In this document: positions 1-45,947 of the stretch, in pieces
How the letters are laid out: the number at the start of each line of letters is the position of its first letter
Numbering within the stretch: the stretch's first letter is position 1
IMG/VR virus record: IMGVR_UViG_3300021338_000003
Span: 1-64,000 of that record
DNA length: 64,000 nucleotides
Reading direction: 5' to 3' (one strand)
Notes under the pieces: model-generated
Databases searched by the model: none
What the model saw: only the letters and a program-made list of their open reading frames with translations
What the model was told of the DNA's origin: nothing
Translations under genes and position numbers: made by a program

Positions 1-804
1 GAAAGAAACGCCAGGCTTCTCACCGGTGTGGTTAGTGAAAATCATCGAGACGTTCTTGCGACCAAGAAGACGCTTGATCTTCCGAAGACCTCGGGAGTGA
101 ACACCCGCCGGTCCAGCCATGTTTTCCTTCTCGGGGTCATCGGCAGTCATCTTAGCGATGAGTGCAGCGGCCGAGTCACAGACGATGAGCATCTGGGGAG
201 GACCACCCTCATCCTGGTCCTCCAGCTCGTTGAGGAGGTACACCAGGTAATTGTAGTAATCGTCCCCATTGTCGTGAGCCTCCATAGTGAAAAGCTCATG
301 CTCGGGGTCAACCCTGTTGGCCAGCATATATCCCTTATCCCAACTTTCCTCAGCATCCCATGCATCAACCGGGATACCTGACTCAAGGGTTGCCGCCATG
401 GTCTGGAAGCAGAGGGTAGTCTTACCAGAATGTTCAGGGCCAAAGTACACCACGAGCTTGCCACCGGGAATGCCTCCTCCAGTCACAAGGTCCAGGTAAT
501 GGGACCCGGTGGTCAAGCAATCGCCAACGAGCTTTGGGCGCAGCTTCCGACGCCGGAAACCGAGCTTCTTCCGAGCCTTCTTCATTCCAGCACTTTCACG
601 GTCGATCTTCGCACCTCGACCCTTGTACTGATCACATGCGGGGGTACCCGTACCGACCCCACGTCCGAGGCGACACGAAATACCCGGAGGCAGGCCGCTC
701 TTCTCAAAGAAGGTATCAATGAACGAACACTGACCGCAGAAATGGTCAGCAAGAACCTTGCGACCGTGTGGGGCTTCGGGTATATCGGTTTTCTTGGCAG
801 GCAT
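1..804 (-). CDS. recA: RecA/UvsX-like recombinase, 3' end truncated by the window edge, with an N-terminal 4-Cys extension
   Basis: Absent from the ORF track because it runs off the edge. Manual translation from ATG 804 gives TGSHYLDLVTGGGIPGGKLVVYFGPEHSGKTTL (RecA P-loop), WDAEES, LIVCDSAAAL (Walker B) and MIFTNH. Confidence 0.92.
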   Translation of the reverse strand, partial: MPAKKTDIPEAPHGRKVLADHFCGQCSFIDTFFEKSGLPPGISCRLGRGVGTGTPACDQYKGRGAKIDRESAGMKKARKKLGFRRRKLRPKLVGDCLTTGSHYLDLVTGGGIPGGKLVVYFGPEHSGKTTLCFQTMAATLESGIPVDAWDAEESWDKGYMLANRVDPEHELFTMEAHDNGDDYYNYLVYLLNELEDQDEGGPPQMLIVCDSAAALIAKMTADDPEKENMAGPAGVHSRGLRKIKRLLGRKNVSMIFTNHTGEKPGVSF

Positions 805-809
805 TGTTG

Positions 810-2597
810 CTATACCTCAATATCAGTGATGGGGGTAACGTTCTCGGCCATACAACCAGTACAATTCACTCTGGATCCAAACCAGTTGCGGCTTTCGGAT
901 AGAGTTTCCTTTCCACACTCAGGACAAAGACCCGGAACGACTCGGCTTTGGAACCCAGAAACGACCCCATCCTCCGAGAAATCGAGGCCGATGTCCCCAT
1001 TCACTCGCTCATTCCTGAAATAGGGCTGGGTCTCGATGTCCTTGGGATAGACGAGGGTATAATATGTCTGGGTCCTATGGTCGAATGGTTCCTTAACCCT
1101 AGACCCTTCCTCGATGACCTTCACCAGGGACTTGAGGTTGGACATCAGGGGCTTGATGTCCGCCATTGTGTCAAAATGACCTCGAAACTTAGATGCCACT
1201 ACCATCTCAGCCCAGGAACTGGAGGACAGGATATTAAGAATAAGTTCACCACGCAGAGTGATTTGGCATGTACTGGGTCCAATCTTCTTCAGCAAACCCT
1301 GACTGAACAGACTTGCCATGACCCGACCAAAATTGGATTGGCGGTCCATGGAATACTCCCGGATAGCCGTCCGCAAAAGGTGACCCTCTGACACATTGGG
1401 ACTGGGCACATACCACTTCTGGACCACAGAAGAAGACTCTACAACAAATTCAGACGCCTTGAACCCTCTTTTGGGAAGGACGTTCTTGTCATCTAGGGTT
1501 GGTTTGGACACGAAGAGCATGCTCTTTGACCCCAATGGCCTCCTCTGACCAGGACCATCCCACAACTTCCACTGGATGGTGCTGCCCTTATTTGCAGACT
1601 CCAAAGCGAGGAGGGCCTGTGACCATACCCACTTGTAAATCACACCCTCGTCAGAGGAGGGATGATCAGCAGGAGTCACAGCAGGGTCTACAGGTTGAAT
1701 GAACAGTGGACCCGGACGCTGAGAGACCCCAGCCGTCTTATATCCCGCGGCCTTCAGAACTTTCTTTCCTCCCCGGATGAATTCTGGATCCATACCATCC
1801 TTAGCCCCCAGTACAGCAGTAATCATCCCACTGCTTTCCAATTTCTGTAGAGCTTTGATTATCCTTGAGCCCGGAAGGCCAACCTCAAGGCAAATATCAT
1901 AAACAAGACTGCCCAGGTTGAGCACAGATGGAGTACTACGACCCGTATCCCACTTGGACACAGTGTCTACAGTCAGAAACCCAGATTCGGCCATCCTCTG
2001 GTATCGTCTAGCAATGCCTTCAGACCCAACACATCCAGACTCCAAAACAACGTCCACTGGACCGCTCAATTTGGTCCGGCATATCCACTCGCATGAGACC
2101 ATCCGTCGACTCTGGAACATTGGCACCGCGGCGATGTGGAGAAGCAACAATTCCCCGACCCCAATGTTCACAGAAGTGCCCAAATATTCGGTAAGAGCCC
2201 GGGAGATATGAAGCCTGGAGAGACCTCGGGCTGCCGTCAGAGCAGTATACTGCTCGATGGCCCCCAGGTCAATGGACTGCTTCTTTCGAAGGGCAGAGTC
2301 CAGACCCTTCTTGTCGGTCACCCTGGAGAGGTCCACCCTGGTACATTTGGCGTCGGGGTGGAACGCCTGCACTTGTTTCTGGATGGCCAGAGATAGAGCC
2401 TCGCCTTCGTTGGTCTGGGGGAACCCCAAGTATACCACGTCTGTGTCCAGATTGGCCAACGTGGATACGGTTCCCGGGTGAAGGGATATCCCCTTTGGAC
2501 CCACCTTCATTCGGTGCTCGGGTAGACAAAGCACCGAATCGTGGATACGACCCAGGAATTCAGCCCGGCTAGGGGACTGCACGAAAATAACGGACAT
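810..2597 (-). CDS. Type IA DNA topoisomerase homolog, predicted catalytically inactive, with C-terminal zinc ribbon
   Basis: Colinear with TopA motifs: IFVQSPSRA (IVESPAKA), VYLGFPQTNEGEAL (IYLATDxDREGEAI), LQKLESSGMITA (AQRLYEAGYITY), IYKWVWSQ, PNVSEGHLL. Ends with CPECG...CTGC. Confidence 0.8.
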   Translation of the reverse strand: MSVIFVQSPSRAEFLGRIHDSVLCLPEHRMKVGPKGISLHPGTVSTLANLDTDVVYLGFPQTNEGEALSLAIQKQVQAFHPDAKCTRVDLSRVTDKKGLDSALRKKQSIDLGAIEQYTALTAARGLSRLHISRALTEYLGTSVNIGVGELLLLHIAAVPMFQSRRMVSCEWICRTKLSGPVDVVLESGCVGSEGIARRYQRMAESGFLTVDTVSKWDTGRSTPSVLNLGSLVYDICLEVGLPGSRIIKALQKLESSGMITAVLGAKDGMDPEFIRGGKKVLKAAGYKTAGVSQRPGPLFIQPVDPAVTPADHPSSDEGVIYKWVWSQALLALESANKGSTIQWKLWDGPGQRRPLGSKSMLFVSKPTLDDKNVLPKRGFKASEFVVESSSVVQKWYVPSPNVSEGHLLRTAIREYSMDRQSNFGRVMASLFSQGLLKKIGPSTCQITLRGELILNILSSSSWAEMVVASKFRGHFDTMADIKPLMSNLKSLVKVIEEGSRVKEPFDHRTQTYYTLVYPKDIETQPYFRNERVNGDIGLDFSEDGVVSGFQSRVVPGLCPECGKETLSESRNWFGSRVNCTGCMAENVTPITDIEV

Positions 2598-2606
2598 TTG
2601 CTCTCC

Positions 2607-2930
2607 CTAGAACAGGCCGAGAGGGCGTAGCCTGTCCCCTAGTGAGTTCAGGTCATCCTGATTTAGCAGGACGTCATGGATGATCTTACCATCCTTGAAG
2701 AAGCGAATCCGTGGGGCCCGAGCGATATCCACCAGGTGGCTTTGAGTCTCATCGATAGGCATCACAAACACTGGTTGTGATCCCTTAATACCATGAAGGT
2801 GCTCGACGAACTTCAGATGCTTTTTGGTTGGCGCTACCATCAGAAGGGCAAACTCCTGATTATCCCTGATAAGAGAGGTATATTGGTGCGCATGGACGTA
2901 GGTGAAACCTTCAGACCCCACGAATTGCAT
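2607..2930 (-). CDS. Thioredoxin-fold protein with no cysteines
   Basis: 107 aa. APRIRFFKDGKII matches the thioredoxin cis-Pro/beta hairpin (PTLLLFKNG), and VFVMPIDE resembles VAKLNID. The WCGPC position reads APTKKHL. Confidence 0.55.
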   Translation of the reverse strand: MQFVGSEGFTYVHAHQYTSLIRDNQEFALLMVAPTKKHLKFVEHLHGIKGSQPVFVMPIDETQSHLVDIARAPRIRFFKDGKIIHDVLLNQDDLNSLGDRLRPLGLF

Positions 2931-2938
2931 ATCTTACC

Positions 2939-4237
2939 TCACTCCATCGGCCGACGCTTGCGCCGACGCTTGCGAGGTGCCTCTTCGGAATCAGACTTGG
3001 TCGGAGGGCGCTTGCGCCGACGCTTACGCGGAGGCGGGGCCTCGTCCTCGCCATCAGCAGGAGGACGAGACTTGCGGGTACGAGTCCGAGTCTTGCCTCT
3101 GGCGGACTTGCTACCGGTCTTCTTCGAACGACGGCGACGGCGAGGAGCCTCTTCCTCCTCCTCGTCATCTTCGGAGCCCGTGTCCTTCCAAGCGTTATCG
3201 TTCTCATCCTTGCCTTCATACAACTCACGACGGGGGCGACCGTCGTCGTCATAATACCCAGACCGCTCCATGAACCGACGCATGTTGTCAGGGTCAACGT
3301 CAGCAGCCGCCATCTCTTCCAGAGGAAGAAGACCGGCCTCCTCGATCACCTTCATGCCTACCAGCGCCTTGGGGTTCTCACGACGGAGCTTGAAAATCCC
3401 CATGATATTGGTCTTCTTGCCGTTCTTGAGAATGTAGCGGCCGAAAACCTCTTTTATCTCATCTGAAGTGAGAGGGTGATTTGGAGCGTCATTGCACTTC
3501 TGTACGGAATACATGTCGTCGGCACGACGAGCCGTCTTGTCGAGGCTCATGGTGATGTCAAATCCCTGTTTGGGGTCAGCGGGATCGACACGTTCAAACT
3601 TGGCGATCTTATCGATAGCCTTCATAGGAGTGTAGGGCATTCCAGATTTACCCAGAACACCGAAGTCAGAATTACCCTTGACCACATCCCGGCCGCGGAT
3701 CGTCTTGACGTTGCGCTCGAAGCAGAACCACCAGGTACGCTGATTTGGGCGGGACTTGAAATCATCACACATGGGGCAGCAAAGGCGGTCCAGACGGACG
3801 GCCTTACCATTTTCCATAGCCCGAGGACAGAACCGGTCCTTGTTGCGGTCCGTTCCTCTGGGCACCTCGATCCCCTGTCGCTCCAGGGCGACAGCCTTTA
3901 CGACCTCGGAATCATACCAGCCCTGACCGGTCTTGGGGTTCTTCCAATCAACAACCTTCTCACGGAAGAGGTCGAACTTGGGGCAGAGGAAAGGAACACC
4001 AGGCGGAGCCTTCGGGGGCTTGAACTCCCTGCCCTCGGCGATGGCCTTTTCTCGCATTGACCCGAGCTTGTCAGCGTAGTCGCCGGCTCCCTGAACACAC
4101 CAATGGTTGGCGATGTCCTGGACGGGACCCACAAGCCGGAAACGACGATTCCGGTTATCAGGTACGATGAAGTTGACATCCTCGTCCCAGCGGCTGCGTC
4201 GCTCGCTGCCGCGGTCACTGTAATTGCGCATATTCAA
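2939..4237 (-). CDS. Putative single-stranded DNA-binding protein (T4 gp32-like) with acidic then Arg/Lys-rich tail
   Basis: RRFRLVG...HW, CCPMCD, DPKQGFDITMS and MYSV resemble the gp32 pattern. It lies in the same operon as recA. Confidence 0.6.
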   Translation of the reverse strand: MNMRNYSDRGSERRSRWDEDVNFIVPDNRNRRFRLVGPVQDIANHWCVQGAGDYADKLGSMREKAIAEGREFKPPKAPPGVPFLCPKFDLFREKVVDWKNPKTGQGWYDSEVVKAVALERQGIEVPRGTDRNKDRFCPRAMENGKAVRLDRLCCPMCDDFKSRPNQRTWWFCFERNVKTIRGRDVVKGNSDFGVLGKSGMPYTPMKAIDKIAKFERVDPADPKQGFDITMSLDKTARRADDMYSVQKCNDAPNHPLTSDEIKEVFGRYILKNGKKTNIMGIFKLRRENPKALVGMKVIEEAGLLPLEEMAAADVDPDNMRRFMERSGYYDDDGRPRRELYEGKDENDNAWKDTGSEDDEEEEEAPRRRRRSKKTGSKSARGKTRTRTRKSRPPADGEDEAPPPRKRRRKRPPTKSDSEEAPRKRRRKRRPME

Positions 4238-5017: not shown

Positions 5018-6310
5018 TTACGACCTCTTCATCTGATCGACCGCAATGAGGGCCATCTGTCGGAGTCTTTCACGGACTATGTCCAGTGGGTACATGTCCT
5101 TACTATCCGGGACAAGGTCAAAGGTACCAAAACAGCAACAGATGACCATTCTTTCTTTGTAGGATAGGGCCGACATGTAGTCACTAGCCTGAGTGGATGA
5201 CTTCCGGGACAACGAGTCCTCTACAGACTCACCTTCGTCTACTACGTTGTCTCGAAGCATGGTGCCAGGGTCGTCTTCGGACAGTGGACTTTCAAGACTG
5301 ACTGGACGATTGATCTGAATGGCCTGCATGACTTCGACCACTTGCTCCTCGGTCATCTTCATTTCTTTGGCGATGGCGGGGATGTCGCCTACAATCCCCT
5401 TGTCGTGGCTCATCTGCTCCATCTTGCGGTACACCTGCCAAAGAGGGGCAGGGATCTTGCACATGTTGGCTTCGGTCTTAAGATGAAGCAGGACCGAAGC
5501 CTGAATCCAGTTGCGAGCCAGTCCCGAAAATGCCTTTTCCCGATTGGGGTCGAAATAATTGGCTGCTCGAACCAAACCAGTGGACCCGTGCTGGAAGTTG
5601 TCGAGTATCTGCTGTTCTGACCTTCCATACTTCCGAGCCATCTGCATCACCAAGCGACGGAAGGAGACCAGAACCTTTGTCCTCATGGCCATAGCAATCT
5701 TCATGTGCCACTGTACCTGCTTGACCACCCCGTAGAAGTGAGTTTGTGTCGCCCCAAACCTTTCCTCCATTGACCTCGCTTTCATTTCCAGTCTTGCTAC
5801 TTCCAGTCTCAACTTCGGTCGAACCCTTTCCCCTATATCCTCAAGTCGTTCAACTTCCAGCCGTTTAGGGATGGCTTGGTCAACATACATGCAGTAGCGC
5901 TTGGTGCTTCGGAGGAATGACTCTCCTAGGATGATATACACTGCATAGACGAAAGGAAGAGATTCCTTGTGTTGAACATAGGGGGATATTGTATCCTTTT
6001 CCTTCATCGCTGAGTGATACATGAAGTCCAAACCCAGCTCAATCAGCAGAACTTCCCGCGGCAGATAATCATCAACTTCATACCCACCCCGCTCTCTGAT
6101 GATGTCCTCCCCGTAGAAGATCGTGACATTTTTGAGAACCTTCGCCGCCATCTTGGTGGTATTCTCAATCATGAAGGCATCGAAGAAGGAAGTATGAGCG
6201 CCTATCAGGTCAGCAACGTCTTCAATCACCTCATAGAACTCATGATACCACCACACCATCTCTCTATGGGGTATCAACGGTGCGTTGTATAGGGTTCCGA
6301 GATTGTACAC
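5018..6310 (-). CDS. Phage-encoded sigma70-family RNA polymerase sigma factor
   Basis: Region 2 LVMQMARKY...QHGSTGLVRAANYFDP...FSGLARNWIQ; region 3 PVSLESPLSEDD; region 4 LSYKERMVI...RERLRQM. Confidence 0.88.
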   Translation of the reverse strand: MYNLGTLYNAPLIPHREMVWWYHEFYEVIEDVADLIGAHTSFFDAFMIENTTKMAAKVLKNVTIFYGEDIIRERGGYEVDDYLPREVLLIELGLDFMYHSAMKEKDTISPYVQHKESLPFVYAVYIILGESFLRSTKRYCMYVDQAIPKRLEVERLEDIGERVRPKLRLEVARLEMKARSMEERFGATQTHFYGVVKQVQWHMKIAMAMRTKVLVSFRRLVMQMARKYGRSEQQILDNFQHGSTGLVRAANYFDPNREKAFSGLARNWIQASVLLHLKTEANMCKIPAPLWQVYRKMEQMSHDKGIVGDIPAIAKEMKMTEEQVVEVMQAIQINRPVSLESPLSEDDPGTMLRDNVVDEGESVEDSLSRKSSTQASDYMSALSYKERMVICCCFGTFDLVPDSKDMYPLDIVRERLRQMALIAVDQMKRS

Positions 6311-7250: not shown

Positions 7251-7287
7251 GAATCACCTCTAATGGATGGAGTTTAGTGGAGACTGC

Positions 7288-8115
7288 ATGCCCGAATGGC
7301 CCGAAGTCAAAGTGGTAGTCCACCAGCTCCAAAGACTGGTAGGGTCTGTCACTTCAAGATCCTGGTCCAACTCCAAGTACAACCCAGGCAGAAAACTCGG
7401 CGGGATAGAAGGACTGAAGGTCAAGAGAATCCGGCAGCGGGCCAAGTTCATCGAATTTCACCTTCGGCAAGGTTCGACCCGCAAAGTAGTCATCTTCCAT
7501 CTTGGCATGTCAGGAAAGCTTGGTATCGTTCCTCTGAGTAGCCCAGCTCTACAGGGTGTTCACTGCCACGCGTGGATGGCTTTCGAACACAAAGAGGCCC
7601 TAGTGTTCGTGGATCCCCGAAAGTTCGGGCGGGCCATGGTCATTGAAGACCCCAGCGTATATCGCTTCGAGTTATACAAAAATATAGGCCCCGAAGCGGC
7701 GGCTATTGACTTCAACACCTTTCACAGTCGCGTGTCCCAGAAACCGAAATGGACGGTCAAGAAGGCTTTGCTTGACCAAAGCCTGGTTTCAGGATACGGC
7801 AATATATATGCGAATGAAATCTTGCATTATGCCCAGGTTCATCCCCACTCAAGGATAGAGCTTGTTCCCCGAGAGCGATGGTTGGCAATCCACGGAGCAA
7901 CCCCACGTCTGTTTGACCATGCCTTCCGATGCGGAGGTTCTAGTCCCCAAAGCTTCCGAGGGCCAAATGGCGAGTCGGGGACCTTCCAAAACCACCACAG
8001 GATATACGGAAGGGAGGGAAAACCTTGTAACAGGTGTGGCAGGCCCATAATGAAAGGGTACCTCGATGGGAGGAGCACCTTTTGGTGCCAATGTTCAACA
8101 ATCTTCGATTATTAG
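7288..8115 (+). CDS. mutM: Formamidopyrimidine-DNA glycosylase / AP lyase (Fpg/MutM)
   Basis: Start reassigned to ATG 7288 (GGAG RBS), giving the catalytic N-terminus MPEWPEV. Also HLGMSG, DPRKFG, H2TH LLDQSLVSGYGNIYANE and zinc finger CNRC...WCQC. Confidence 0.93.
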   Translation: MPEWPEVKVVVHQLQRLVGSVTSRSWSNSKYNPGRKLGGIEGLKVKRIRQRAKFIEFHLRQGSTRKVVIFHLGMSGKLGIVPLSSPALQGVHCHAWMAFEHKEALVFVDPRKFGRAMVIEDPSVYRFELYKNIGPEAAAIDFNTFHSRVSQKPKWTVKKALLDQSLVSGYGNIYANEILHYAQVHPHSRIELVPRERWLAIHGATPRLFDHAFRCGGSSPQSFRGPNGESGTFQNHHRIYGREGKPCNRCGRPIMKGYLDGRSTFWCQCSTIFDY

Positions 8116-8123
8116 GAGAGGCC

Positions 8124-8375
8124 ATGCGTATGGTGGTTTTCTATTTGCTTCTGACTGGCTGTGTTTCCGAAGACACGGCTGTGTCTTATGCTCGGCGAGC
8201 CCACCCCGAGTGCTCCGGTCATGACGCCCTGTCACACCGATGGGCGGAAACCAGCCAGACCGAGGTGTCTATGGTCTGTGGGCCACCTGACCAGCCGGTG
8301 CGCCGTTCCATCACCGTCAAATGTGTGCATGGATTCGGCATTTTCGCCGATACCACCTGTCACGAAAACAACTGA
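8124..8375 (+). CDS. Small lipoprotein
   Basis: Start ATG 8124 after AGGAG. MRMVVFYLLLTG-C is a lipobox; the mature part is Cys-rich. Confidence 0.6.
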   Translation: MRMVVFYLLLTGCVSEDTAVSYARRAHPECSGHDALSHRWAETSQTEVSMVCGPPDQPVRRSITVKCVHGFGIFADTTCHENN

Positions 8376-8387
8376 GGGAGGTCCCAC

Positions 8388-9254
8388 GTGGCCAAGGTTA
8401 CGCTCAAATCTGCTGCCTATCTCAGGGGTGAGAAGGTGGTGTCCATCTTGGCCGTGTCCGAAGGCCAAATCCAATCCTCGCTCTTCTTCCGGCTGGGTAT
8501 GAAGTGCATGGAGAGAAAGAACGAGGATGGGGATGTTAGGGAGATTTGGTACTATGACCACCCCACCAACATCATGGCCATCCGCAATCTCAAGATGTCT
8601 TGGAAGGCCCAGGGAGTTGACCTCACTCTAGACTTGACCGATGCACTTGGTAATTCCATGGTTGACCTTTTGCATCCACGGGCGGTGAGATTCTATTCCA
8701 AGGAATTTCATCAAAAGATGGGTACTGACCCCATCTGGCAGGCACCCACTGCCGTGGACAAAATGGCAATGGGCCTCATAGCCAAGAAGCATCCACATCT
8801 GGCATCGGCTGCCGTCCTCATCCTCATTGAGGATTATGACCCCGAAAAGAAGGCAGAGCAAATCGCTCGAACAGGAAAGAAGAGCGAGGTTTGGGGATTC
8901 TGCCAGAAGATGAGCAAGACCGAGAAATCTCACACTGGGTTTGATTTCAAGATCACTCTTTGTCACGAGATTTGGCAACGGTTCGATCATGCCCACAAGC
9001 GCTATATGCTGGACCATGAGTTGATGCACTGTGGCCGAACCGAAAAGGGCAGGTGGGTATTGCTGGACCATGACGTTCAGCTCTTCAGCCAAGAGGTAGA
9101 AGAGTACAGCAACGTCATCCCTGCCCTCAATAGAGAAGTTAGCGCTCTATTGTTCAAGAAGAAGAGTGCCGACGCCGAGGGTGATACCAAGAGCGCTGAT
9201 AAGAAGGTACGGAGGCGCAAGAAGAAGCGCAAGCCCAAACCTGAATCCGACTGA
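8388..9254 (+). CDS. Phage metallopeptidase-domain protein
   Basis: DFKITL...LDHELMHCG...LLDHDVQLF (HExxH plus downstream HD); basic C-terminal tail. Confidence 0.75.
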   Translation: MAKVTLKSAAYLRGEKVVSILAVSEGQIQSSLFFRLGMKCMERKNEDGDVREIWYYDHPTNIMAIRNLKMSWKAQGVDLTLDLTDALGNSMVDLLHPRAVRFYSKEFHQKMGTDPIWQAPTAVDKMAMGLIAKKHPHLASAAVLILIEDYDPEKKAEQIARTGKKSEVWGFCQKMSKTEKSHTGFDFKITLCHEIWQRFDHAHKRYMLDHELMHCGRTEKGRWVLLDHDVQLFSQEVEEYSNVIPALNREVSALLFKKKSADAEGDTKSADKKVRRRKKKRKPKPESD

Positions 9255-9271
9255 TGCGGTAGGATTCGGAC

Positions 9272-9463
9272 ATGGCAAACAATCCTGCACTACAGGATAA
9301 GATAGAGTGGGCCCCAGACGATTGGGACTACCACTATGTGCCGTTGACTGATACCCACATCTTCGTTCATGACCTCACCGGACATTCGGTCATCATAAAC
9401 GGAGACTTCGATATAGACGAGATGAAAGAATACCTCAAGGAGTGGTCAAATGCACATTCTTGA
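9272..9463 (+). CDS. Hypothetical protein
   Basis: 63-aa ORF in the operon with an AGGA RBS. Confidence 0.55.
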   Translation: MANNPALQDKIEWAPDDWDYHYVPLTDTHIFVHDLTGHSVIINGDFDIDEMKEYLKEWSNAHS

Positions 9464-10112
9464 CTGGAGTTGGGGCCCGGACAACAAGCTCGGTCTCGGA
9501 GCAGCCCTGGGTATCGGGATGTTCGTGGGGTCGGTGGTCCTCATCATTTTGAATGAAACCACCGACATCTTCAGAAAGCCCAAACCGCCAGCCTTTCAAG
9601 GTGATTGGATTCCCGACCATCAGAACGCTTGTCATGACTACAAGGAACTCGGACTATTGCAAGAGGCCAAAATCCTCTTCGAGGAGGACCTTTCCTGGCC
9701 GATATGGCCTGACCTCGACGTAGTCACCTGTGACTACGTTCACGGGCCATCTCCTACTGGCACCATCACCTTCAGGTCCTGCAATTCTCTCCGCAGGACC
9801 CGAGATGGGGACGTTATCCCTTGCCCCATGGAGGGGCTCAAAAGGGTCCCTGGAGCTACGTACACCAATGTGGATGCCAACGGCATGGTCCGGTCCATTG
9901 ATGTGTACACCAACTTCAACGAAATCAGTATGTGCAGCCCCGCCCACGAATATGGGCATGCCAGGGGTCTACGAAAGAAGAGGGATGAGGAAGTCCCAGG
10001 CATGTACGTGATCAGCGGACACACCGAGAAGCCTGGTCACCTGATGGGCACACCATGTGGGTTCGGAACCAAGTGGCTGGACCGTGGCCCCGACGGTGAC
10101 TGGCCCTACTAG
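9450..10112 (+). CDS. Membrane-anchored metzincin-like zinc protease
   Basis: N-terminal TM helix; AHEYGHARGL...GH...LMG (HExxHxxG, displaced third His, Met-turn). Confidence 0.6.
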   Translation: MHILDWSWGPDNKLGLGAALGIGMFVGSVVLIILNETTDIFRKPKPPAFQGDWIPDHQNACHDYKELGLLQEAKILFEEDLSWPIWPDLDVVTCDYVHGPSPTGTITFRSCNSLRRTRDGDVIPCPMEGLKRVPGATYTNVDANGMVRSIDVYTNFNEISMCSPAHEYGHARGLRKKRDEEVPGMYVISGHTEKPGHLMGTPCGFGTKWLDRGPDGDWPY

Positions 10113-11071: not shown

Positions 11072-11611
11072 TCAGTGCATCGGCCCGCTGTTGACCATGA
11101 CGAACCAGTCAGGTTTCTGGATTACCCCGGTTTCAACCAACCACGACAGGTGGTCAGCCAGTGGCACCCCTGTGGCCTTGGCTTGAAGCCGGTACAACTC
11201 CATTTGGTCGAAGGGGACCATGACGAACTCCCCTCTATGGACCATGGCTACCATCTTAGCCAGAGACATACAATCATCCTCGGTGAAAGTTGCCTCAATA
11301 TGAACCTTCACCAACCGGGACCATTCATCCCGGAGGTCCACGGGCGGGGTCCACCAAGAATGGAGAATCCACCTCAGGGCGATACCATACCCCTCCCAGG
11401 TAGAGAGGTCCATGACCAAGGTGTCAGCCGGTGTTTTGTACGAATAGTCCTCACCGAGCGGGAAGTAGAGAGGATCCTCAGTGACAGCCCTATCCCAAGG
11501 GAGGTGCACAATACCACGAGTAGGGTGCTCTGTACACATGTGAATCACATGTTGACCATGGGAGAACACAAGACCCCGAGGGAGTTCGTATGCCCAATCG
11601 GGAATTCTCAT
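11072..11611 (-). CDS. Hypothetical protein
   Basis: 179-aa ORF with an ATGA overlap with the SbcC-like gene. Confidence 0.6.
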   Translation of the reverse strand: MRIPDWAYELPRGLVFSHGQHVIHMCTEHPTRGIVHLPWDRAVTEDPLYFPLGEDYSYKTPADTLVMDLSTWEGYGIALRWILHSWWTPPVDLRDEWSRLVKVHIEATFTEDDCMSLAKMVAMVHRGEFVMVPFDQMELYRLQAKATGVPLADHLSWLVETGVIQKPDWFVMVNSGPMH

Positions 11612-13677
11612 CTCTTCCTCCTCTTGATTTGGCTGAAGACTTCAGGTCTGCTGACGGTATACTCGCGGTCAAAACCCTCAAACGACTTGATAGCCGGAGT
11701 GTGGGTGATGGCGAAGATGGTCTCGTATTCACTCTTAAGATCGGCCAGGACCTCAACCAGCTCCTCTGGACGGTCGAGACCACCATCGAATTCATCAAGG
11801 AACAGGAGGTTGGTCTTAACCCGCCGAATGTCCCGCTCAGTGAGAAGAAGAGCAATAGACAGCCGCTTTTTCTCACCCTTACTCAACACCCGGACATCAC
11901 TGTTAACACCTTCCACCTTGTCGTGGCACATGAACGCCGTCTTCTTCTCGTTGTCCACTAGGCTGAAAGTATACCGAGGTAGAAGAGTATTGGCATAATG
12001 GTCGAGGTGCTCGGCAATCAATGCCAGAATCTCTCGTACCCGGTCCCGGCGAAGACCTTGTCGACCGAAAGCAGATACCAAGCCCTCGAAGATTTCCAGT
12101 TCTTCGGCTATGGGCTTACCCTTCTCCACCAAGCCTTCAACACGTTCAATGGATTCCTTAATACGGGCTTCCTTCTGGATGTGAGCCCTGACCTTTTCTA
12201 CCTCCTCAGTCAGCACTCGCTCCTTCCGTCTGCATTTCTCCAAGCGGGCCTTCCACTGCTTCAGTTCTACTTGGGTTTTGCGTGGGTCACCCTTGGCCAG
12301 CCCTTGGAGTTTCTTTTCTTGTTCGGCATTCTTCTTGGCCCGCACAATCCGATTGTGGAGAGCAGTGTCCTTCTCATACAGGACATCCTTTTCTCTCTCT
12401 AGTCTCTCTAGAACCCCCGGTGGTCTTGAAGGAAGGGCAGCCTTGGCCTCCCGAACCACCTCACGAAGCCCTCTGGCTTCATCAAAGACCTCAAGGATGT
12501 CTTCCAAGGTCTCAATCTTCTTCTGATATATCCGAGAGCGCTTCGTAAGAATAGCCAGTCTGGATTCGTAATTCCCCTGGTGGATATGGTCCAATCCCTG
12601 TTCGCAAGTGGGGCATGTGTCCTGCCCCTCAAGCCGTTCCATCAAAGAAATCTCTGCTTCAACCTCGGCGAGATTTTTCCGAGTGACCTTGACCCTTGCC
12701 CGGCATTTCTTTTCGTCATGGCTACTAACCTCTGACAATGCTTCTTTCAGGTCAACAACCGCTTTCTCATGGCGTTTTTTGTGGGCATAATAGGAGTCAT
12801 GGATGTCAAGCTTGTCATCGATTTGGTCCATCTTATCCCGAATCTTGGTTTGACGAGCCCGAAGAACCTCAAGGGACTCCTTCTCCTTTCCCTGCGCTAG
12901 AGTCATTTGAATGTTCTGCCTGGTCCTCTGCTCGGCCAAGAGTTTAACCAAATTGACGACCAAACGGTCAGCTTTGTCAACCTTTTTCCTGACGGCATCT
13001 CTGGCGGATTTCTTCCTCTTCAACTCGGAGTAATCGACTGGCTTGAGATTGCGGAGGTCTTCACGAAGAAGCTTCAACCGAACTTCATTTTCTTTGTGTT
13101 CCTCCATCAAACCCCGAATAGCCTTGAGCCTCTTTTGGGCCGCATCGTGATACTCCCCATACTCAAGGTCAAAAGTTTGGGATACGTAATCAGTCCGGCT
13201 GGCATCCGTCCCATCAATGAGAGGGTGAATTGACTCCGACCCCAAAGACACCACAGCCCGGAACTCGGCATAGGACATACCCAAAAGGTCGGATGCCATT
13301 TTCTGGGCCTGCACCGGCTTCTTAACCGGCGTGATGGGCTCCTCTTCTTCCCCCCTCCAGATTCGAATGCCCGTAGGCTCCCCTGGCACCTTTCGGCAGC
13401 ACATAACCACATATGGGACCCACTCGTCGCCCTCCTGGCGCTCAAGCTCCACCATACCCATGAAGTCTTTGCCGACGGTCCTAGAAATGACGTCGTTGTT
13501 CTTCCCGGATTTCTCACTCTGATTGTAGAAAATCAGCGATAGAAGCTCGGGGATGTTGGACTTCCCGGTTCCATTCTTTCCCTGAACCAGGACAAGACCT
13601 CGGTTCTCCAACCGCAGGAACAGCTCCTTCCAAGTGAGCCCATGGCGAACCTTCAAGCTCTTCAGACGAATTTGCAA
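11608..13677 (-). CDS. sbcC: SbcC/Rad50/gp46-like ABC ATPase recombination nuclease subunit
   Basis: Walker A GKNGTGKS, long coiled coils with a CPTC zinc hook, signature LSKGE, Walker B LFLDE and H-loop ITH. Confidence 0.92.
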   Translation of the reverse strand: MQIRLKSLKVRHGLTWKELFLRLENRGLVLVQGKNGTGKSNIPELLSLIFYNQSEKSGKNNDVISRTVGKDFMGMVELERQEGDEWVPYVVMCCRKVPGEPTGIRIWRGEEEEPITPVKKPVQAQKMASDLLGMSYAEFRAVVSLGSESIHPLIDGTDASRTDYVSQTFDLEYGEYHDAAQKRLKAIRGLMEEHKENEVRLKLLREDLRNLKPVDYSELKRKKSARDAVRKKVDKADRLVVNLVKLLAEQRTRQNIQMTLAQGKEKESLEVLRARQTKIRDKMDQIDDKLDIHDSYYAHKKRHEKAVVDLKEALSEVSSHDEKKCRARVKVTRKNLAEVEAEISLMERLEGQDTCPTCEQGLDHIHQGNYESRLAILTKRSRIYQKKIETLEDILEVFDEARGLREVVREAKAALPSRPPGVLERLEREKDVLYEKDTALHNRIVRAKKNAEQEKKLQGLAKGDPRKTQVELKQWKARLEKCRRKERVLTEEVEKVRAHIQKEARIKESIERVEGLVEKGKPIAEELEIFEGLVSAFGRQGLRRDRVREILALIAEHLDHYANTLLPRYTFSLVDNEKKTAFMCHDKVEGVNSDVRVLSKGEKKRLSIALLLTERDIRRVKTNLLFLDEFDGGLDRPEELVEVLADLKSEYETIFAITHTPAIKSFEGFDREYTVSRPEVFSQIKRRKR

Positions 13678-22889: not shown

Positions 22890-25800
22890 ATGACTACCCG
22901 ACGCAAAAACAGCCTAACAAAGATGTTCGGGTGGATGAAGAACAGCCCTCTCATCCGCAAGGTTGTAGCCTTTGCCCTATCTCGAAAGAGGGGTGGTCCC
23001 TCAGCCGCCCTGGCAGTCGAGCATCAGGGTGGTCAGGACCTAGATGACCGTTATGGTCCTCTACCCGTAGATTCCGATAACTATATTCTCGACCCCTATA
23101 CCGGTGAAAGACTTCAGGTTGAAAACGGTTGGGAAGATACCGATACGGTTGGGGACCACGAACCGTATTTGGGTGCCATCGGTCGTAGTGATGGTTCTAT
23201 TCGGATCGGAAGCGGCGCACCTGCCTCCCAAAGGCGACAAGGTCTAGACCAACTAGACTTCACTAATTATTTGCAGGTCACCCTTTCAGAAGACGCTCAC
23301 AGCTTCATTGCGCAAGCCACGATGACTGGGTCTCCGACGCTAGAAAACCCGGTCTTCGGGATCGATGCATCCGATTACCGGTGGGGTATTCAGGTAGTCG
23401 GGCCGAACGAGATTAGTAACCGCATTTTCGATAACACCGTGGTACGTGCTACTGCCACCATCACGGGTGCCAGCGCATTCGCATCTGGTGTGACGTTCAC
23501 CGCTGGAGGTGGTGCCGACTCTGATGGTGATGTATCCCTAGCCGCGTGGGATGACACGGGCACGGAAGTTAACACCCCAGATACCGACAACTTCGCCGGT
23601 ACCGTCACCAGCCTGGCGGGTGAGTACACTATTGGCCGTGGCCGCGGAGGCGGTGATTTCGTCAATGGGACCATCAATGTATGGGGTGGCTTCGACGGTG
23701 ACCATTATGATTCTGCGACGCTTTCAACAATGGAGGCATCCATTCGTGCCGGGATGGATGTAGATACCCTAGCCGGGACGTATGGCGGGGCTTGGTCGGA
23801 TGGTATAACACCGGGCGCTTACTCCCGCATCGCAACCGAGAAACTTTTCAGTCTATCAGGGGCTGGGTCGAAGCCAGTGGTTGCTCGCCCGGGCACATCA
23901 GGAGAAACATACACCCAGCCACAGGATATCGATGGTCTAATCGGTGATTGGGATTGCTTGCGCGGTGCTACCTATACCGGTACCACCCTGACGGGTTGCT
24001 ATGATTATGGTCCAAATGAGTGGGACCTGACTCACGGTAGCACCGTAGGCCAACGTACTGTCGAGATGCTGGGTCGCAACGTATTCCTTCCAGGTACCGG
24101 TGGAGGGACTTACCTGGAGCGTGCGATCACTACAACCATCGAAGACTTCACCGTTACGTGCTCGATCCCGATCAGGTCGTACAGCTCGACGGGCCGTTCG
24201 TATTTCAGCATGAACGTAGCGGCCATCGCCACGTGGGGACTTCAGATCCAGCAGGGGCCGTCTGTTGGTACAATGGCCATCCTTGACGATTCTGGTACTA
24301 CGGTTGCAACCATACCTCATGGTGCCCGTACCTCGGGCAACGGTGATGCTGCTCATGCGATCCTGGTGTTTCGACGTACAGCTGGTGGGGATGTTGTTGT
24401 CGACTGCTGGTATGACCAGGACGCGGGAGGCGGGTTGGTACGGTCCACACAGGTGGTAGCCTCCGATACCTTCTCTGCGTCGATTGACGTTACTGGAGTG
24501 GCAGTCGGCGGAAGGTATGGAACAAGCGTAGGGTCGTGGAACAGCTTTTCAGGCGTGCACCGTGTTACTATGCACGACAGCGCCATATCTGACGATGACA
24601 TGATTGCCGTGGTCAAGGGTCACGCTGCCCGACTGGGTTGGGACACCGATTTGATTAAGCCTCTGGTTCTACCGGCCAAGGCTGCGCGTTACGTCGGCGG
24701 GAAGACGCTCGAAGATAGCGTAGGCGAGCTTCCGAAGGACGCAGACGGTTACTATCTTACGCGGAATGGGTTGTCCTACCTCACGGTAGACGATGGGTTC
24801 GACATTGGCGATGTCGTCGGTGAACCCAAGCTCTACGGTCTACTCACTGCACAGGTGATAGGAAACCCGGCCACCCAGCGCCGCTCGGGCTTCGACAACA
24901 ATGACGACCTCAACTACGCGCTCGTGACTCTCGATACGAGCGACATCTCCTTCCTCGTCTCGGCCAACCGTGCAACGAACACCTATGACGCCATCTTCGA
25001 TTCAACAACGGCTGACCCGCGAGTCCAGTTATCGACTGGTCCAGGAGGCATCGCCACACTGCGGATGCGCACCACCGACGGAGGCGTCACCGAATTTGCT
25101 GATACAGCAGGAATTGTCCCGCCTGGGCAGAACTTCTTCGGCGGTACCTTGGATGGTAGCACGGGAGACATGCTGTCGAAGGTGTGGGATAGCTCCGGTG
25201 CCCCATTGGGCACAGGGTCTCACACCGGAACGGTAGCTGTCGACATTTCCGGTCCCCTCTACTTGGGTCGGCAATTCAACAACGCATATGCCTGGGATAG
25301 CGGCATCTTCTGGGCCATGGGTTGGGACGGGACGGTCATGTCCGAAGCTGACCTTGACGCCATCGTAGCGGCAATGCAGGCCGGTGCGGACATCGATGAC
25401 ATCAGGACCACCTACGGTGTCACGTTGGCCACGGACGGTATCGTCTGCGGTGCCTACGACCCCGATAACCCTACGGTCCTCTTCACCGAAGCTGGTGCAG
25501 GCGAGTCTGTCCGACTCCACAACACGGCTCCGGCACTCCCCGCAGTCGCCGCCCGCTACATCGGAGGGAAGACTCTGAATGACTCCATCGGGGAGCTGTT
25601 CAAGGATGATGACGGCTACTACCAGTCGCGCCTCACCGGCGAATACCTGACTTTGGACGATGGATTCGGGTCAGGGGATGCGATTGGTCCGGAGTACATG
25701 TATGGCCTGAAGACCGCCGTAGTAGAGAACAACGGCACACCAATCGCACGTGGTGGGTTGCGCCGGAACGGGTTTACATTCGATAGCTCTGGCAGTCAGT

Positions 25801-27338
25801 ACATCGGATTCAACCTCACCTCCGAAGAGGCTCACAGCTTCCTCGTCTACCTGGAAGGCGATCCGTCTGTGACGAGCCCCAGCACCCAGTTCGTGTTTGG
25901 CTTTGATGCCACGGCTCCTCTCGGGGCAGGCTGGCAAGGCTTGCTGTCGAACTTGGAACCCAACCTTCGGACTTACAACGCTGCGACCACCGAGGATGTA
26001 GCCGCACGTGTACTGATTTCACAACCGGTCACTGCCAATGACCTCCAGTGGATCGGCGGCTTCCACGACGGCACCGACACCGAGCTATCGTGCTGGGATG
26101 ATGTCGGTGCACAGCTGGGGGTCACTGGCACAAGTACCCGCTCTGTGCCCGTCACGCTTACGGCGCAGCCCTACTTCCTCGGCGGTCGGCCTGGCGGTGG
26201 TGTGCCTCTCCAGTACGCCGAAGTGCTGGAAGTCTACGGATGGGACGGTGGTGCAGGGAAGACTTTCTCGGAGCTGCAGGCAGTCATCGACGCATCCATT
26301 GCAGGCGGAGAACCCTCCGCCAATGCACCGGGTGCAGACCTGGCCTCCGACGGCATCATCTGCGGTGCCTACGACCCGCTGGACACGACCATCCTCTTCA
26401 CCGAATCCGGGGCAGGGGAGTCGGTGCGTGCTCACGTCACTGCACCCGTGGTACCGGCTCTCGTCGCACGCTACAACGGAGGTAAGACTCTCACGGATGC
26501 AACAGGTGAGCTGCCCAAGGACGAGAACGACTACTATAAGTCGCGCCTTACCAACGAGTACCTCTCTGTCGATACGGGATTCGCCGACACAGACGTTGTG
26601 GGTGAGCCGAAGGTGTACGGTCTTCTGACTGCCACGGTACATGGCGCGCCTGCAACTGCGCGACGTTCGGGCTTCGATGCCTGCACCGACGCAGACTACA
26701 TCGAGATCCTCCTGTCTGACTCTGACTACGGGAGTGCGCTGGCGCTGACTCGACAGACATCCACCCCGGCTGTACCGCAGGGATTCCTCTTCGGGGCAGG
26801 TACTGACCCTCGATGGGGAATGCTGTACACCTCGGGTGATTACCGAACCCAGACGGTCAACAGTGGTGTACTGCAGACCGACATAGCCGGAGCACTGTCC
26901 ACCACGGCGGCTGATCGGTTCATCGCTGCCACTGTAGACAACGCGAGCGGAACTCTTACGCAGACGGCACACGCATGGGATGAGACAGGAACGCCACTGG
27001 CAGGCTCTCCGGATCAGGACACTAGCGGTGCCCACGGCGGGGACCTTTCCGGAGTCTATTACCTTGGTCGGACCAAGAGCACCGGGTATGCCTACACCAG
27101 TGGAACAGTCCGAATTGCTCTCGGATGGGATGGAGCGACTTTGTCCGATGCGCAGCTGCAGTCTGTCGTAGATGACATCCTGGCTGGAGAGGATATCGAC
27201 ACTGTAGCCAGCAACGCTGCTGTGATGCCTGCCCTGGCGACAGACGGACTCGTTTGTGGAGTCTATGACCCCTACGATACCGCCCTACTCTACACTTTGG
27301 GAGCCTCAGGTGCTGACGTTACCCTGACAACTCCGTAA
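22890..27338 (+). CDS. Giant repetitive virion fibre/adhesin with ConA/LamG-like modules
   Basis: 1482 aa, rich in G/T/A/D. Four units of about 290 aa start with ARYxGGKTLxDxxGELxKD (first copy degenerate) and end with DGxxxGxY, plus one different LamG-like insert. Confidence 0.7.
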   Translation: MTTRRKNSLTKMFGWMKNSPLIRKVVAFALSRKRGGPSAALAVEHQGGQDLDDRYGPLPVDSDNYILDPYTGERLQVENGWEDTDTVGDHEPYLGAIGRSDGSIRIGSGAPASQRRQGLDQLDFTNYLQVTLSEDAHSFIAQATMTGSPTLENPVFGIDASDYRWGIQVVGPNEISNRIFDNTVVRATATITGASAFASGVTFTAGGGADSDGDVSLAAWDDTGTEVNTPDTDNFAGTVTSLAGEYTIGRGRGGGDFVNGTINVWGGFDGDHYDSATLSTMEASIRAGMDVDTLAGTYGGAWSDGITPGAYSRIATEKLFSLSGAGSKPVVARPGTSGETYTQPQDIDGLIGDWDCLRGATYTGTTLTGCYDYGPNEWDLTHGSTVGQRTVEMLGRNVFLPGTGGGTYLERAITTTIEDFTVTCSIPIRSYSSTGRSYFSMNVAAIATWGLQIQQGPSVGTMAILDDSGTTVATIPHGARTSGNGDAAHAILVFRRTAGGDVVVDCWYDQDAGGGLVRSTQVVASDTFSASIDVTGVAVGGRYGTSVGSWNSFSGVHRVTMHDSAISDDDMIAVVKGHAARLGWDTDLIKPLVLPAKAARYVGGKTLEDSVGELPKDADGYYLTRNGLSYLTVDDGFDIGDVVGEPKLYGLLTAQVIGNPATQRRSGFDNNDDLNYALVTLDTSDISFLVSANRATNTYDAIFDSTTADPRVQLSTGPGGIATLRMRTTDGGVTEFADTAGIVPPGQNFFGGTLDGSTGDMLSKVWDSSGAPLGTGSHTGTVAVDISGPLYLGRQFNNAYAWDSGIFWAMGWDGTVMSEADLDAIVAAMQAGADIDDIRTTYGVTLATDGIVCGAYDPDNPTVLFTEAGAGESVRLHNTAPALPAVAARYIGGKTLNDSIGELFKDDDGYYQSRLTGEYLTLDDGFGSGDAIGPEYMYGLKTAVVENNGTPIARGGLRRNGFTFDSSGSQYIGFNLTSEEAHSFLVYLEGDPSVTSPSTQFVFGFDATAPLGAGWQGLLSNLEPNLRTYNAATTEDVAARVLISQPVTANDLQWIGGFHDGTDTELSCWDDVGAQLGVTGTSTRSVPVTLTAQPYFLGGRPGGGVPLQYAEVLEVYGWDGGAGKTFSELQAVIDASIAGGEPSANAPGADLASDGIICGAYDPLDTTILFTESGAGESVRAHVTAPVVPALVARYNGGKTLTDATGELPKDENDYYKSRLTNEYLSVDTGFADTDVVGEPKVYGLLTATVHGAPATARRSGFDACTDADYIEILLSDSDYGSALALTRQTSTPAVPQGFLFGAGTDPRWGMLYTSGDYRTQTVNSGVLQTDIAGALSTTAADRFIAATVDNASGTLTQTAHAWDETGTPLAGSPDQDTSGAHGGDLSGVYYLGRTKSTGYAYTSGTVRIALGWDGATLSDAQLQSVVDDILAGEDIDTVASNAAVMPALATDGLVCGVYDPYDTALLYTLGASGADVTLTTP

Positions 27339-45683: not shown

Positions 45684-45947
45684 ATGGTTCACGATGTAGA
45701 AATGGACTTTGATGGGGTTATCAACGACCCCAACATTTTCCCCGGCCATGGAAGGATGCTGGGCCATTTCTCCTTCCATGATGTTGAGAACAAGGCGTTG
45801 AAGGAGCATTATGCTCACTTTGCTTATTTGGCCATCCATGTTATAACCTCATGCCCTGCGGTTCTAGAGCGACAGGTGGAGGCCACGGTGGCACTACGTA
45901 AGCTTCTTGAGGCCCGGGACGCTTTCGAGCGGGCTGTGGCGTGGTAG
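45684..45947 (+). CDS. Acb2/Tad1-like helical hairpin protein (putative cyclic-nucleotide sponge)
   Basis: HFSFH...HFAYLA..VI..CP...EATVALRKLLEARDAFERAV; GGAGG RBS. Confidence 0.5.
   Translation: MVHDVEMDFDGVINDPNIFPGHGRMLGHFSFHDVENKALKEHYAHFAYLAIHVITSCPAVLERQVEATVALRKLLEARDAFERAVAW

Follow-up and report, generated by a model that had tools for sequence, protein, structure and literature searches.

The window analysed here is the 64,000-nucleotide (nt) stretch at positions 1 to 64,000 of IMG/VR virus record IMGVR_UViG_3300021338_000003. Its minus strand carries, at 810-2597, an open reading frame (ORF) whose 595-amino-acid (aa) product has the predicted fold of bacterial DNA topoisomerase I (TopA), a type IA enzyme, and has alanine in place of the active-site tyrosine. 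Our model is that this protein is a pseudo-topoisomerase retained by the phage as a non-catalytic component of its recombination module, a reading to which we assign a probability of about 0.6; its partner and its mechanism are ones that we infer. To our knowledge, type IA enzymes are universal and no natural one without the tyrosine is known.

Fold and active site of the topoisomerase-like protein

The topoisomerase-like ORF starts with an ATG and continues uninterrupted for 595 codons to its stop codon. A Shine-Dalgarno (SD) sequence, GGAGAG, is located on the minus strand at 2601-2606, 3 nt ahead of the ATG and right behind the stop codon of the upstream gene. Codon usage of the ORF correlated with that of the adjacent genes in frame (r=0.75), as opposed to values of -0.11 and -0.02 out of frame, and the probability of 595 open codons arising by chance at the base composition of the window was 1.3e-11. 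The assignment of the ORF as TopA-derived is based on this frame and coding signal together with profile homology and the predicted fold.

Homology was not apparent from routine searches. The protein was scanned against Pfam, PHROGs, NCBIfam, PADLOC and PDB sequences without any topoisomerase or other informative match, and neither PF01131, PF01751 and PF01396 nor the NCBIfam models matched the protein itself. Weak helix-turn-helix and AMA1 matches in these library scans were discarded as noise. Similarly, tblastn against 50,697 phage records gave zero matches, a word-indexed homologue search matched the protein only to itself, and the same type of search with a profile of the degenerate subset found cellular TopA only. 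A search for related loci with the window's protein or its relative P0002 returned the source contig and one giant-virus fragment only, and the BFVD viral structure library yielded only four matches, three of them enzymes of giant viruses and the other a phage fragment.

When 1.84 billion cluster representatives were searched exhaustively with phmmer, nine relatives of 591-670 aa emerged with E values from 7e-20 (P0002, the best match) to 6e-4. Together with the window's protein (P0001) these make up the ten-member family considered below, to which P0027 was added by a later search. The match to P0005, an intact enzyme, had an E value of 5e-7. PF01131 was found in 9/9 relatives (1e-33 in the case of P0002), and four of the nine also have a complete Toprim domain with no catalytic motif missing. 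The intact relatives are of the TopA type rather than the Topo III/TopB type, the best model being topA_bact (E=1.6e-118). When a profile was built from the relatives and E. coli TopA with the query left out, it matched the topoisomerase-like ORF at E=8e-47 and gave no second match in the window or a 10-kb flank. A second type IA gene and a type IB topoisomerase of the kind found in phage PaBG were both rejected for this region, as none was found.

Structure prediction led to the same family. The AlphaFold2 (AF2) model of the protein had a mean predicted local distance difference test score (pLDDT) of 78 and a predicted template-modelling score (pTM) of 0.72. Foldseek aligned this model to full-length E. 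coli Topo I with E=4.4e-24 and a query template-modelling score (TMq) of 0.71, and all of the top 50 PDB matches were type IA enzymes (TopA, Top3 or reverse gyrase). ESM Atlas independently gave a TM of 0.75 across residues 1-552. Hence the full-length TopA-type fold proposed in a preliminary description of this DNA, which was made from the sequence alone, was recovered by Foldseek. On these predictions the ORF encodes a TopA-derived type IA fold consisting of a TOPRIM domain, domains II-IV and a C4 zinc ribbon.

We mapped catalytic residues by MAFFT alignment, with E. coli TopA as the anchor, using the canonical residue set for type IA enzymes (PMC2647314). The degenerate TOPRIM domain comprises residues 1-105 (2283-2597, minus strand), is assigned from this alignment and was modelled at pLDDT 70-91. 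Within it, the IVESP motif is replaced by FVQSP, such that E9 becomes Q7 (codon at 2577-2579), and DLDRE is replaced by PQTNE (P60-Q-T62-N-E64, 2406-2420), with D111 and D113 becoming P60 and T62. The SAGRVQ motif reads NIGVGE, which changes R195 to V147 and Q197 to E149; the remnant of the GRxQ DNA-backbone motif, G146-V-G-E149, is at 2151-2162. The former active-site strand and loop, ITYMRTD in E. coli TopA and ITYxRTD in active enzymes generally, is now I259-T-A261-V-L263-G-A265 (1803-1823), in which Y319, R321 and D323 correspond to A261, L263 and A265. Lastly, AHEAIRP is replaced by (G)PLFIQP (P297-L-F-I-Q-P, 1692-1709), with H365, E366 and R369 becoming P297, L298 and Q301. All of these positions are on the minus strand.

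In total, ten functionally important positions are replaced (Glu9, Asp111, Asp113, Arg195, Gln197, Tyr319, Arg321, Asp323, His365 and Glu366). The motif-by-motif reading in the preliminary description was therefore borne out by the anchored alignment, but its statement that every catalytic residue is lost was too broad, as the third acidic residue of DxDxE is retained (E115, here E64) and K13 remains a basic residue (R11). In E. coli TopA, Arg321, His365 and GRxQ support cleavage, religation and DNA binding. R195 is kept by 9/9 relatives and Q197 by 8/9, and both are lost only in the window's protein. The canonical groove residues for single-stranded DNA (ssDNA), R168, D172 and Y177, are also lost in this protein alone. 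By structure it belongs to the type IA family, yet, as far as residue identity can indicate, it falls short on each enzymatic feature examined (the tyrosine, the TOPRIM acids, and Arg321, His365 and GRxQ), and as such it cannot be expected to cut, relax or decatenate DNA.

We considered the possibility that the protein is still a topoisomerase in which a relocated tyrosine and another acid or base, or residues supplied by a partner, carry out the chemistry. Pseudoenzymes sometimes have migrated catalytic residues (PMC10211241). Of the former active site, E64 and R11 are left, and a conserved tyrosine, Y199, is newly present in the clade. However, none of the 13 tyrosines aligns to the active-site position or to positions lining the active site, and none lies within 25 residues of A261. 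Y199 itself aligns to E. coli A257 in domain II, the arch, a position that we take to be far from the interface of TOPRIM and domain III in TopA structures. Moreover, the former active-site loop was modelled at pLDDT <50 (residues 264-266 are low in the AF2 model), and ten important positions have been replaced together. Retained topoisomerase activity is thus very improbable.

The C-terminal domain (residues 501-595; 813-1097, minus strand) differs from the catalytic core in its conservation. It consists of a relic of a first ribbon without cysteines followed by the C4 ribbon at 852-926, whose ligands C558, C561, C579 and C582 are invariant in 10/10 family members. The intact 595-aa frame and C4 ribbon noted in the preliminary description were both confirmed. 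The four intact enzymes and two other relatives have cysteines in the first ribbon; these cysteines are lost in the window's protein, P0002, P0004 and P0010. Identity of the C-terminal domain to the relatives was 30-38%, equal to the level among the intact enzymes, which makes it the best conserved part of the protein. None of the ten members matched PF01396 (Zn_ribbon_Top1), and a profile of the C-terminal domain found only generic C4 ribbons in PDB and Pfam, with E values of 0.02 or worse. The earlier suggestion of competition with the host TopA-RNA polymerase interaction found no footing in these results; nothing else points there.

A graded family and the probable retention of the gene

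The family is rare, with about 11 phage clusters that range from intact TopA-type enzymes through to dead ones. Catalytic residues are intact in P0005, P0006, P0007 and P0009. P0003 has D for E9, DxI, and ITHYQTDS in which the Tyr and His positions are swapped. Tyr is replaced by Phe in P0008, by Ser in P0002 and P0027, by Thr in P0010 and by Ala in the window's protein, which has the highest number of losses. P0004 keeps E9 and the active-site Tyr and has lost the whole DxDxE cluster (P-x-T-x-H in its place), Arg321 (now W) and His365. Loss of the Tyr, which the preliminary description had proposed to check in an alignment of homologues, is shared by several relatives. The P0004 and P0003 genes, at 8001-9851 of locus L005 and 8001-9938 of locus L014, represent intermediate catalytic states, and proteins of this type might cleave ssDNA yet fail to religate it. 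This speculation leans on E. coli TopA mutants of TOPRIM and Arg321.

R321 and H365 are both gone in P0001, P0002, P0003, P0004 and P0008, and P0027 is without R321 but has His at position 365. The states of the metal site and the tyrosine vary member by member. This pattern suggests that the chemistry was compromised early, at R321 and H365, and that the remaining residues drifted later. In a maximum-likelihood (ML) tree, P0008 grouped with P0001, P0002 and P0004 (support 91/94), whereas P0010 was placed beside the intact P0007 (support 96/94), indicating an independent loss. The lineage that lost R321/H365 also has features of domain II in common, R198-Y199 and R353/L355, which are absent from the intact enzymes. 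The R198-Y199 motif (2001-2006, minus strand, in the window) is conserved only in P0001, P0002, P0003, P0004, P0008 and P0027.

The RecA tree mirrors the topoisomerase tree, from which we conclude that the genes are vertically inherited orthologues. The window's gene is, by this comparison of sequences, an orthologue of active TopA-type enzymes in related phages and has been co-inherited with the adjacent RecA gene. It has nevertheless diverged far more than its neighbours. Identity between the phages of the window's protein and P0002 was 73% for RecA, 56% for the Mre11-like protein, 53% for a protein resembling an ssDNA-binding protein (SSB), 34% for a thioredoxin (Trx)-like protein and 24% for the topoisomerase-like protein. 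Ratios of topoisomerase to RecA terminal branches in the ML trees were 1.1 for P0005 and P0009 and 1.2 for P0003, all intact or nearly so, and rose with degeneracy to 2.0 for P0008, 2.2 for P0010, 2.5 for P0004, 4.5 for P0002 and 10.5 for the window's protein. Relaxation was domain-specific, in that identity in D1, D3 and D4 fell from 34-55% among the intact members to 12-29% for the window's protein.

P0027 is 67% identical to P0002 and its locus is fully syntenic, which allowed an estimate of selection. For this pair of topoisomerase-like genes dN was 0.227, dS was at least 2 and dN/dS was about 0.1, with no region above 0.15. The ratio is comparable to that of an ordinary gene of the block, ATP_bind_3 (0.09), and dN was about 4 times that of RecA. 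As P0002 and P0027 both have Ser for Tyr, the low ratio indicates that the Tyr-less state is selectively maintained there. For the window's own gene, signs of maintenance are the open frame despite saturating divergence, the codon usage, the zinc ligands and the confident fold. Given the divergence of RecA since the split from P0002, synonymous change should be saturated, yet all 595 codons are open. Taken together, sequence and model suggest that the window's gene is retained and not decaying. The preliminary description had likewise preferred retention to decay, a preference strengthened by the intact ORF, SD sequence and codon usage, the normal rate of the zinc-ribbon domain and the sister-pair dN/dS.

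A contrary explanation is that the gene is a relic in slow decay that has no function of its own, its frame having stayed open recently by chance or for read-through to a translationally coupled recA start. The 10.5-fold acceleration over RecA is the highest in the family, residues of both the active site and the groove have been lost, and the recA SD sequence falls within the 3'-terminal part of the ORF, the two genes being 5 nt apart. On the other hand, chance would seldom leave 595 codons open (1.3e-11) after synonymous change had saturated, and translational coupling by itself would not preserve a fold. The residues that determine the fold are conserved, as are the four zinc ligands at the far C-terminal end, AF2 and ESMFold both produced a confident toroid, and the Tyr-less sister genes have a dN/dS of about 0.1. 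We therefore regard slow decay as quite unlikely.

The acceleration could instead reflect a conflict. The protein might be a decoy or competitor that absorbs a host factor or a toxin aimed at type IA enzymes, or that blocks host TopA, RecA or SSB, and it would then evolve at arms-race speed. Viral pseudoenzymes are frequently decoys or modulators (PMC7605207), and evolution of the window's protein is strongly accelerated. However, the acceleration tracks the number of catalytic losses and spares the C-terminal domain, so relaxed constraint fits better than targeted positive selection. In addition, dN/dS of the sister pair was about 0.1 in every region with no fast patch, and the gene is orthologous to active enzymes that occupy the same operon position. 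PADLOC gave zero matches, whether for the topoisomerase-like protein or for its relatives and neighbours, and genes of defence or anti-defence are absent from its surroundings in the window. The decoy for topoisomerase-directed toxins that had been proposed earlier found no support in these last two results. A role in conflict in the wider sense is unlikely.

Gene context and the proposed role in recombination

Among the ten family members, the topoisomerase-like gene is located 0-2 genes upstream of a RecA-family recombinase gene on the same strand in nine, and the same arrangement is present for P0027. This adjacency holds for the intact P0005, P0006 and P0009 as well as the degenerate P0001, P0002, P0003, P0004, P0008 and P0010. 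The tenth member, P0007, is at a contig end with its RecA neighbourhood out of range. After recA there are usually genes for a phosphoesterase of the Mre11 type, a clamp loader and a Rad50-like ATPase. In the window, the topoisomerase-like gene is tightly packed, at 9 nt from its upstream neighbour and 5 nt from recA, and is predicted to be co-transcribed with the phage recombination genes. It is the conserved position upstream of RecA together with the gradient from active to dead enzymes that led us to favour recombination over the three earlier ideas of ssDNA clamp, decoy and RNA polymerase competitor.

The RecA/UvsX-type recombinase gene occupies 1-804 on the minus strand (PF00154, E=2.9e-30). 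It starts 5 nt past the stop codon of the topoisomerase-like gene and is cut by the window start; in the full contig it is complete and encodes 462 aa (L002 11794-13182). The phage RecA is extended at its N-terminus by about 90 aa, in which an HGRK motif and four cysteines (C23, C26, C44 and C57) are invariant (634-738, minus strand). This extension, probably a zinc finger by its cysteine pattern, is kept in four aligned lineages, those of the phages of P0001, P0002, P0004 and P0008.

A thioredoxin-fold protein of 107 aa with zero cysteines is encoded at 2607-2930 (minus strand), and its gene is conserved directly upstream of the topoisomerase-like gene in the degenerate clade. It had an Atlas TM of 0.70-0.75 and is without the CxxC motif. 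Copies of 106-108 aa are present at L004 2221-2541, L005 7664-7987, L009 2969-3295 and L040 9669-9989, with a further one as an uncalled ORF at about 7600-7940 in L014. From its predicted fold it looks like a second pseudoenzyme of the operon, possibly a structural cofactor. Host thioredoxin is a structural cofactor of T7 DNA polymerase.

The next gene (2939-4237, minus strand) encodes a conserved 432-aa protein that is a candidate SSB of the gp32 type. Its Atlas score was 0.89 with gp32 in 79/100 matches, and by synteny it corresponds to the protein annotated as SSB in PaBG. Its end consists of an acidic run followed by EAPRRRRRSKK, PRKRRRKRPP and PRKRRRKRRP, three copies of an Arg/Lys-rich motif resembling a nuclear localisation signal, and the last ~130 residues are predicted to be disordered.

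In our model, the ancestor would have been an active topoisomerase I working with phage RecA/UvsX in recombination-dependent replication or repair. Chemistry would have been lost first at Arg321 and His365, with the metal site and the tyrosine drifting afterwards. The protein would have been retained in that machinery in a non-catalytic capacity, most likely as an architectural or loading factor. Binding would occur via the conserved zinc-ribbon domain and the clade-specific surface of domain II (R198-Y199, R353), and would be directed at DNA or at a partner protein, for example RecA, the SSB-like protein or the Trx-fold protein. Precedents exist for elements of this model. Top3 acts in Sgs1-Dna2 end resection independently of its own catalysis (PMC7017083), E. 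coli Topo I is stimulated specifically by active RecA filaments (PMC1761438), and ssDNA binding persists in type IA active-site mutants (PMC2647314). More specifically, the protein could be a dedicated non-catalytic accessory factor of the viral RecA, serving as a loader, filament regulator or joint-molecule clamp by means of the zinc ribbon and the new domain II surface. We propose this version only tentatively, as it is possible but less than probable.

Several observations weigh against this role in recombination. Gene adjacency amounts to co-regulation and does not establish physical or functional coupling. The window's protein is the longest branch of the family and its core is weakly constrained, and dN/dS was measurable for the sister pair P0002/P0027 only and not for the window's own gene. 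Because R195, Q197, R168, D172 and Y177 have been lost, canonical binding of ssDNA in the groove may be impaired or gone. The ssDNA clamp of the preliminary description is still possible but is weakened by these losses, and a role as a protein scaffold is at least as likely. As for the proposed partners, the assignment of the 432-aa protein as an SSB is only a lead based on the Atlas score and synteny; BLASTP against the syntenic proteins of PaBG and NCTB was non-significant, and AF2 modelled the 432-aa protein poorly (pLDDT 57), with no Foldseek match. Finally, our topoisomerase search spanned 64 kb and the 10-kb flank of a genome of ~250 kb, so that an active enzyme could be encoded elsewhere.

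The module also has a restricted distribution. In PaBG and NCTB, two cultured jumbo phages, the gene order is sigma, SSB, RecA without the topoisomerase-like gene, and the gene is absent from the distant phage RecA loci found with a RecA bait among metagenome and viral contigs. This bait search yielded one partial new locus, L021. Membership in a Topo III/RecQ-type dissolvasome was rejected, as the family is TopA-type and neither RecQ nor RMI1 genes are present in the conserved block; the sole helicase gene of the window, at 45941-47572, is at a distance of 43 kb.

The remaining genes of the region fit a large tailed phage. A phage sigma-70-family factor gene heads the conserved block at 5018-6310 (minus strand) and is also present in L005, L008, L014 and L040. 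The gene for an SMC/Rad50-SbcC-like ATPase at 11608-13677 (minus strand) belongs to the same replication and recombination region and is syntenic in L004, L005, L014 and L040. Along with these, we identified genes for a Fpg/Nei glycosylase, a phage metallopeptidase, a clamp loader, an ATP-dependent ligase, a helicase and an NlpC/P60 lysin domain. The host of the topoisomerase-like gene is an uncultured marine jumbo phage. Its source contig of ~250.8 kb (250,817 bp at JGI) is listed as a viral genome. Position 1 of the window is the end of the JGI contig, and an ENA assembly (250,597 bp, circularly permuted relative to JGI) and a Logan contig read through it. Since two other assemblies cross the contig end, the genome is probably complete, being either circularly permuted or terminally redundant. 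The identical topoisomerase-like sequence was found at low depth with zero differences in three seawater metagenome runs, so contigs from these runs held no variants for within-population dN/dS. None of the RNA runs was shown to contain the gene, and scans of the window for tRNAs and Rfam families gave zero matches.

We also observed several features that are separate from the module itself. The Fpg/Nei-family DNA glycosylase gene, which encodes a zinc finger, is located at 7267-8115 on the plus strand and also occurs in the P0003 phage (L014 1-424), indicating that this phage group encodes its own base-excision enzyme. Near the module, the P0003 phage carries an anti-Pycsar Apyc1-like gene of the metallo-beta-lactamase fold and an intein/LAGLIDADG gene (L014 467-1465 and 2386-4587). 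A protein with a cREC-type receiver domain (PF20274) is encoded at L002 15360-15731, ~1.5 kb downstream of the Mre11-like gene; the cREC domain has been described in jumbo phages (PMC7824862). Lastly, two giant ORFs are adjacent on the plus strand, one of 1482 aa without a Pfam match (22890-27338) and one of 1254 aa with a SASA-type carbohydrate esterase domain (27375-31139). Both probably encode virion or tail-fibre proteins.

Significance and comparison with known systems

Active, partly degenerate and dead proteins at one operon position form a natural series that separates scaffold or partner-binding roles from strand passage and makes the observation directly testable. The conserved phage TopA-RecA gene pair also provides a genetic handle on cooperation between RecA filaments and topoisomerase I (PMC1761438). 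Were the protein an accessory factor, the family would record the stepwise conversion of a DNA-cleaving enzyme into a recombination cofactor, and in its active members a phage TopA-RecA functional pair would be recognised for the first time. A dead protein that modulates RecA would represent a new class of recombination mediator, whereas one without measurable effect would be a well-documented case of the persistence of a large fold after loss of function.

In a full-text literature search we came across no account of a type IA pseudo-topoisomerase and none of a phage TopA-RecA module, and the module is not mentioned in a 2025 'moraphage' paper. A survey of 224 jumbo phages reported type II and type IB topoisomerases and no type IA enzyme (PMC7824862). 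The nearest analogy is with Topo VIII and Mini-A, which are also topoisomerase homologues on mobile elements that depart from the canonical enzyme (PMC7671362), but they are of the unrelated type IIB class with a different fold and different partners.

The window's protein shares with bacterial TopA the four-domain toroid and the C-terminal zinc ribbon (TMq 0.64-0.71 to the E. coli enzyme and 0.68 to T. maritima 2gai), and in its length and one-ribbon layout it resembles T. maritima TopA, which has a single C4 ribbon. Unlike bacterial TopA, such as the E. coli enzyme with its 67-kDa core and zinc ribbons, it has lost the catalytic and GRxQ residues, is unrecognised by Pfam models and is encoded by a phage within a recombination operon. 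Top3 of the eukaryotic Sgs1-Top3-Rmi1 complex is likewise a type IA protein in homologous recombination with a role independent of strand cleavage (PMC7017083), and its pathway includes Mre11- and Rad50-type genes, as does the phage module. In contrast to the phage protein, Top3 belongs to the Topo III subfamily, is catalytically competent, acts also in the dissolution of double Holliday junctions and D-loops, and depends on RecQ and RMI1 as partners, homologues of which were not seen beside the phage gene. The closest counterparts are the active TopA-type enzymes of uncultured phages (P0005, P0006, P0007 and P0009). These orthologues of 622-670 aa have the same terminal C4 ribbon and, in P0005, P0006 and P0009, the same place directly upstream of RecA, with the Mre11-like gene after it. 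They differ from the window's protein in possessing all catalytic motifs and a second, Cys-bearing ribbon, and in evolving at a RecA-like rate (1.1 versus 10.5).

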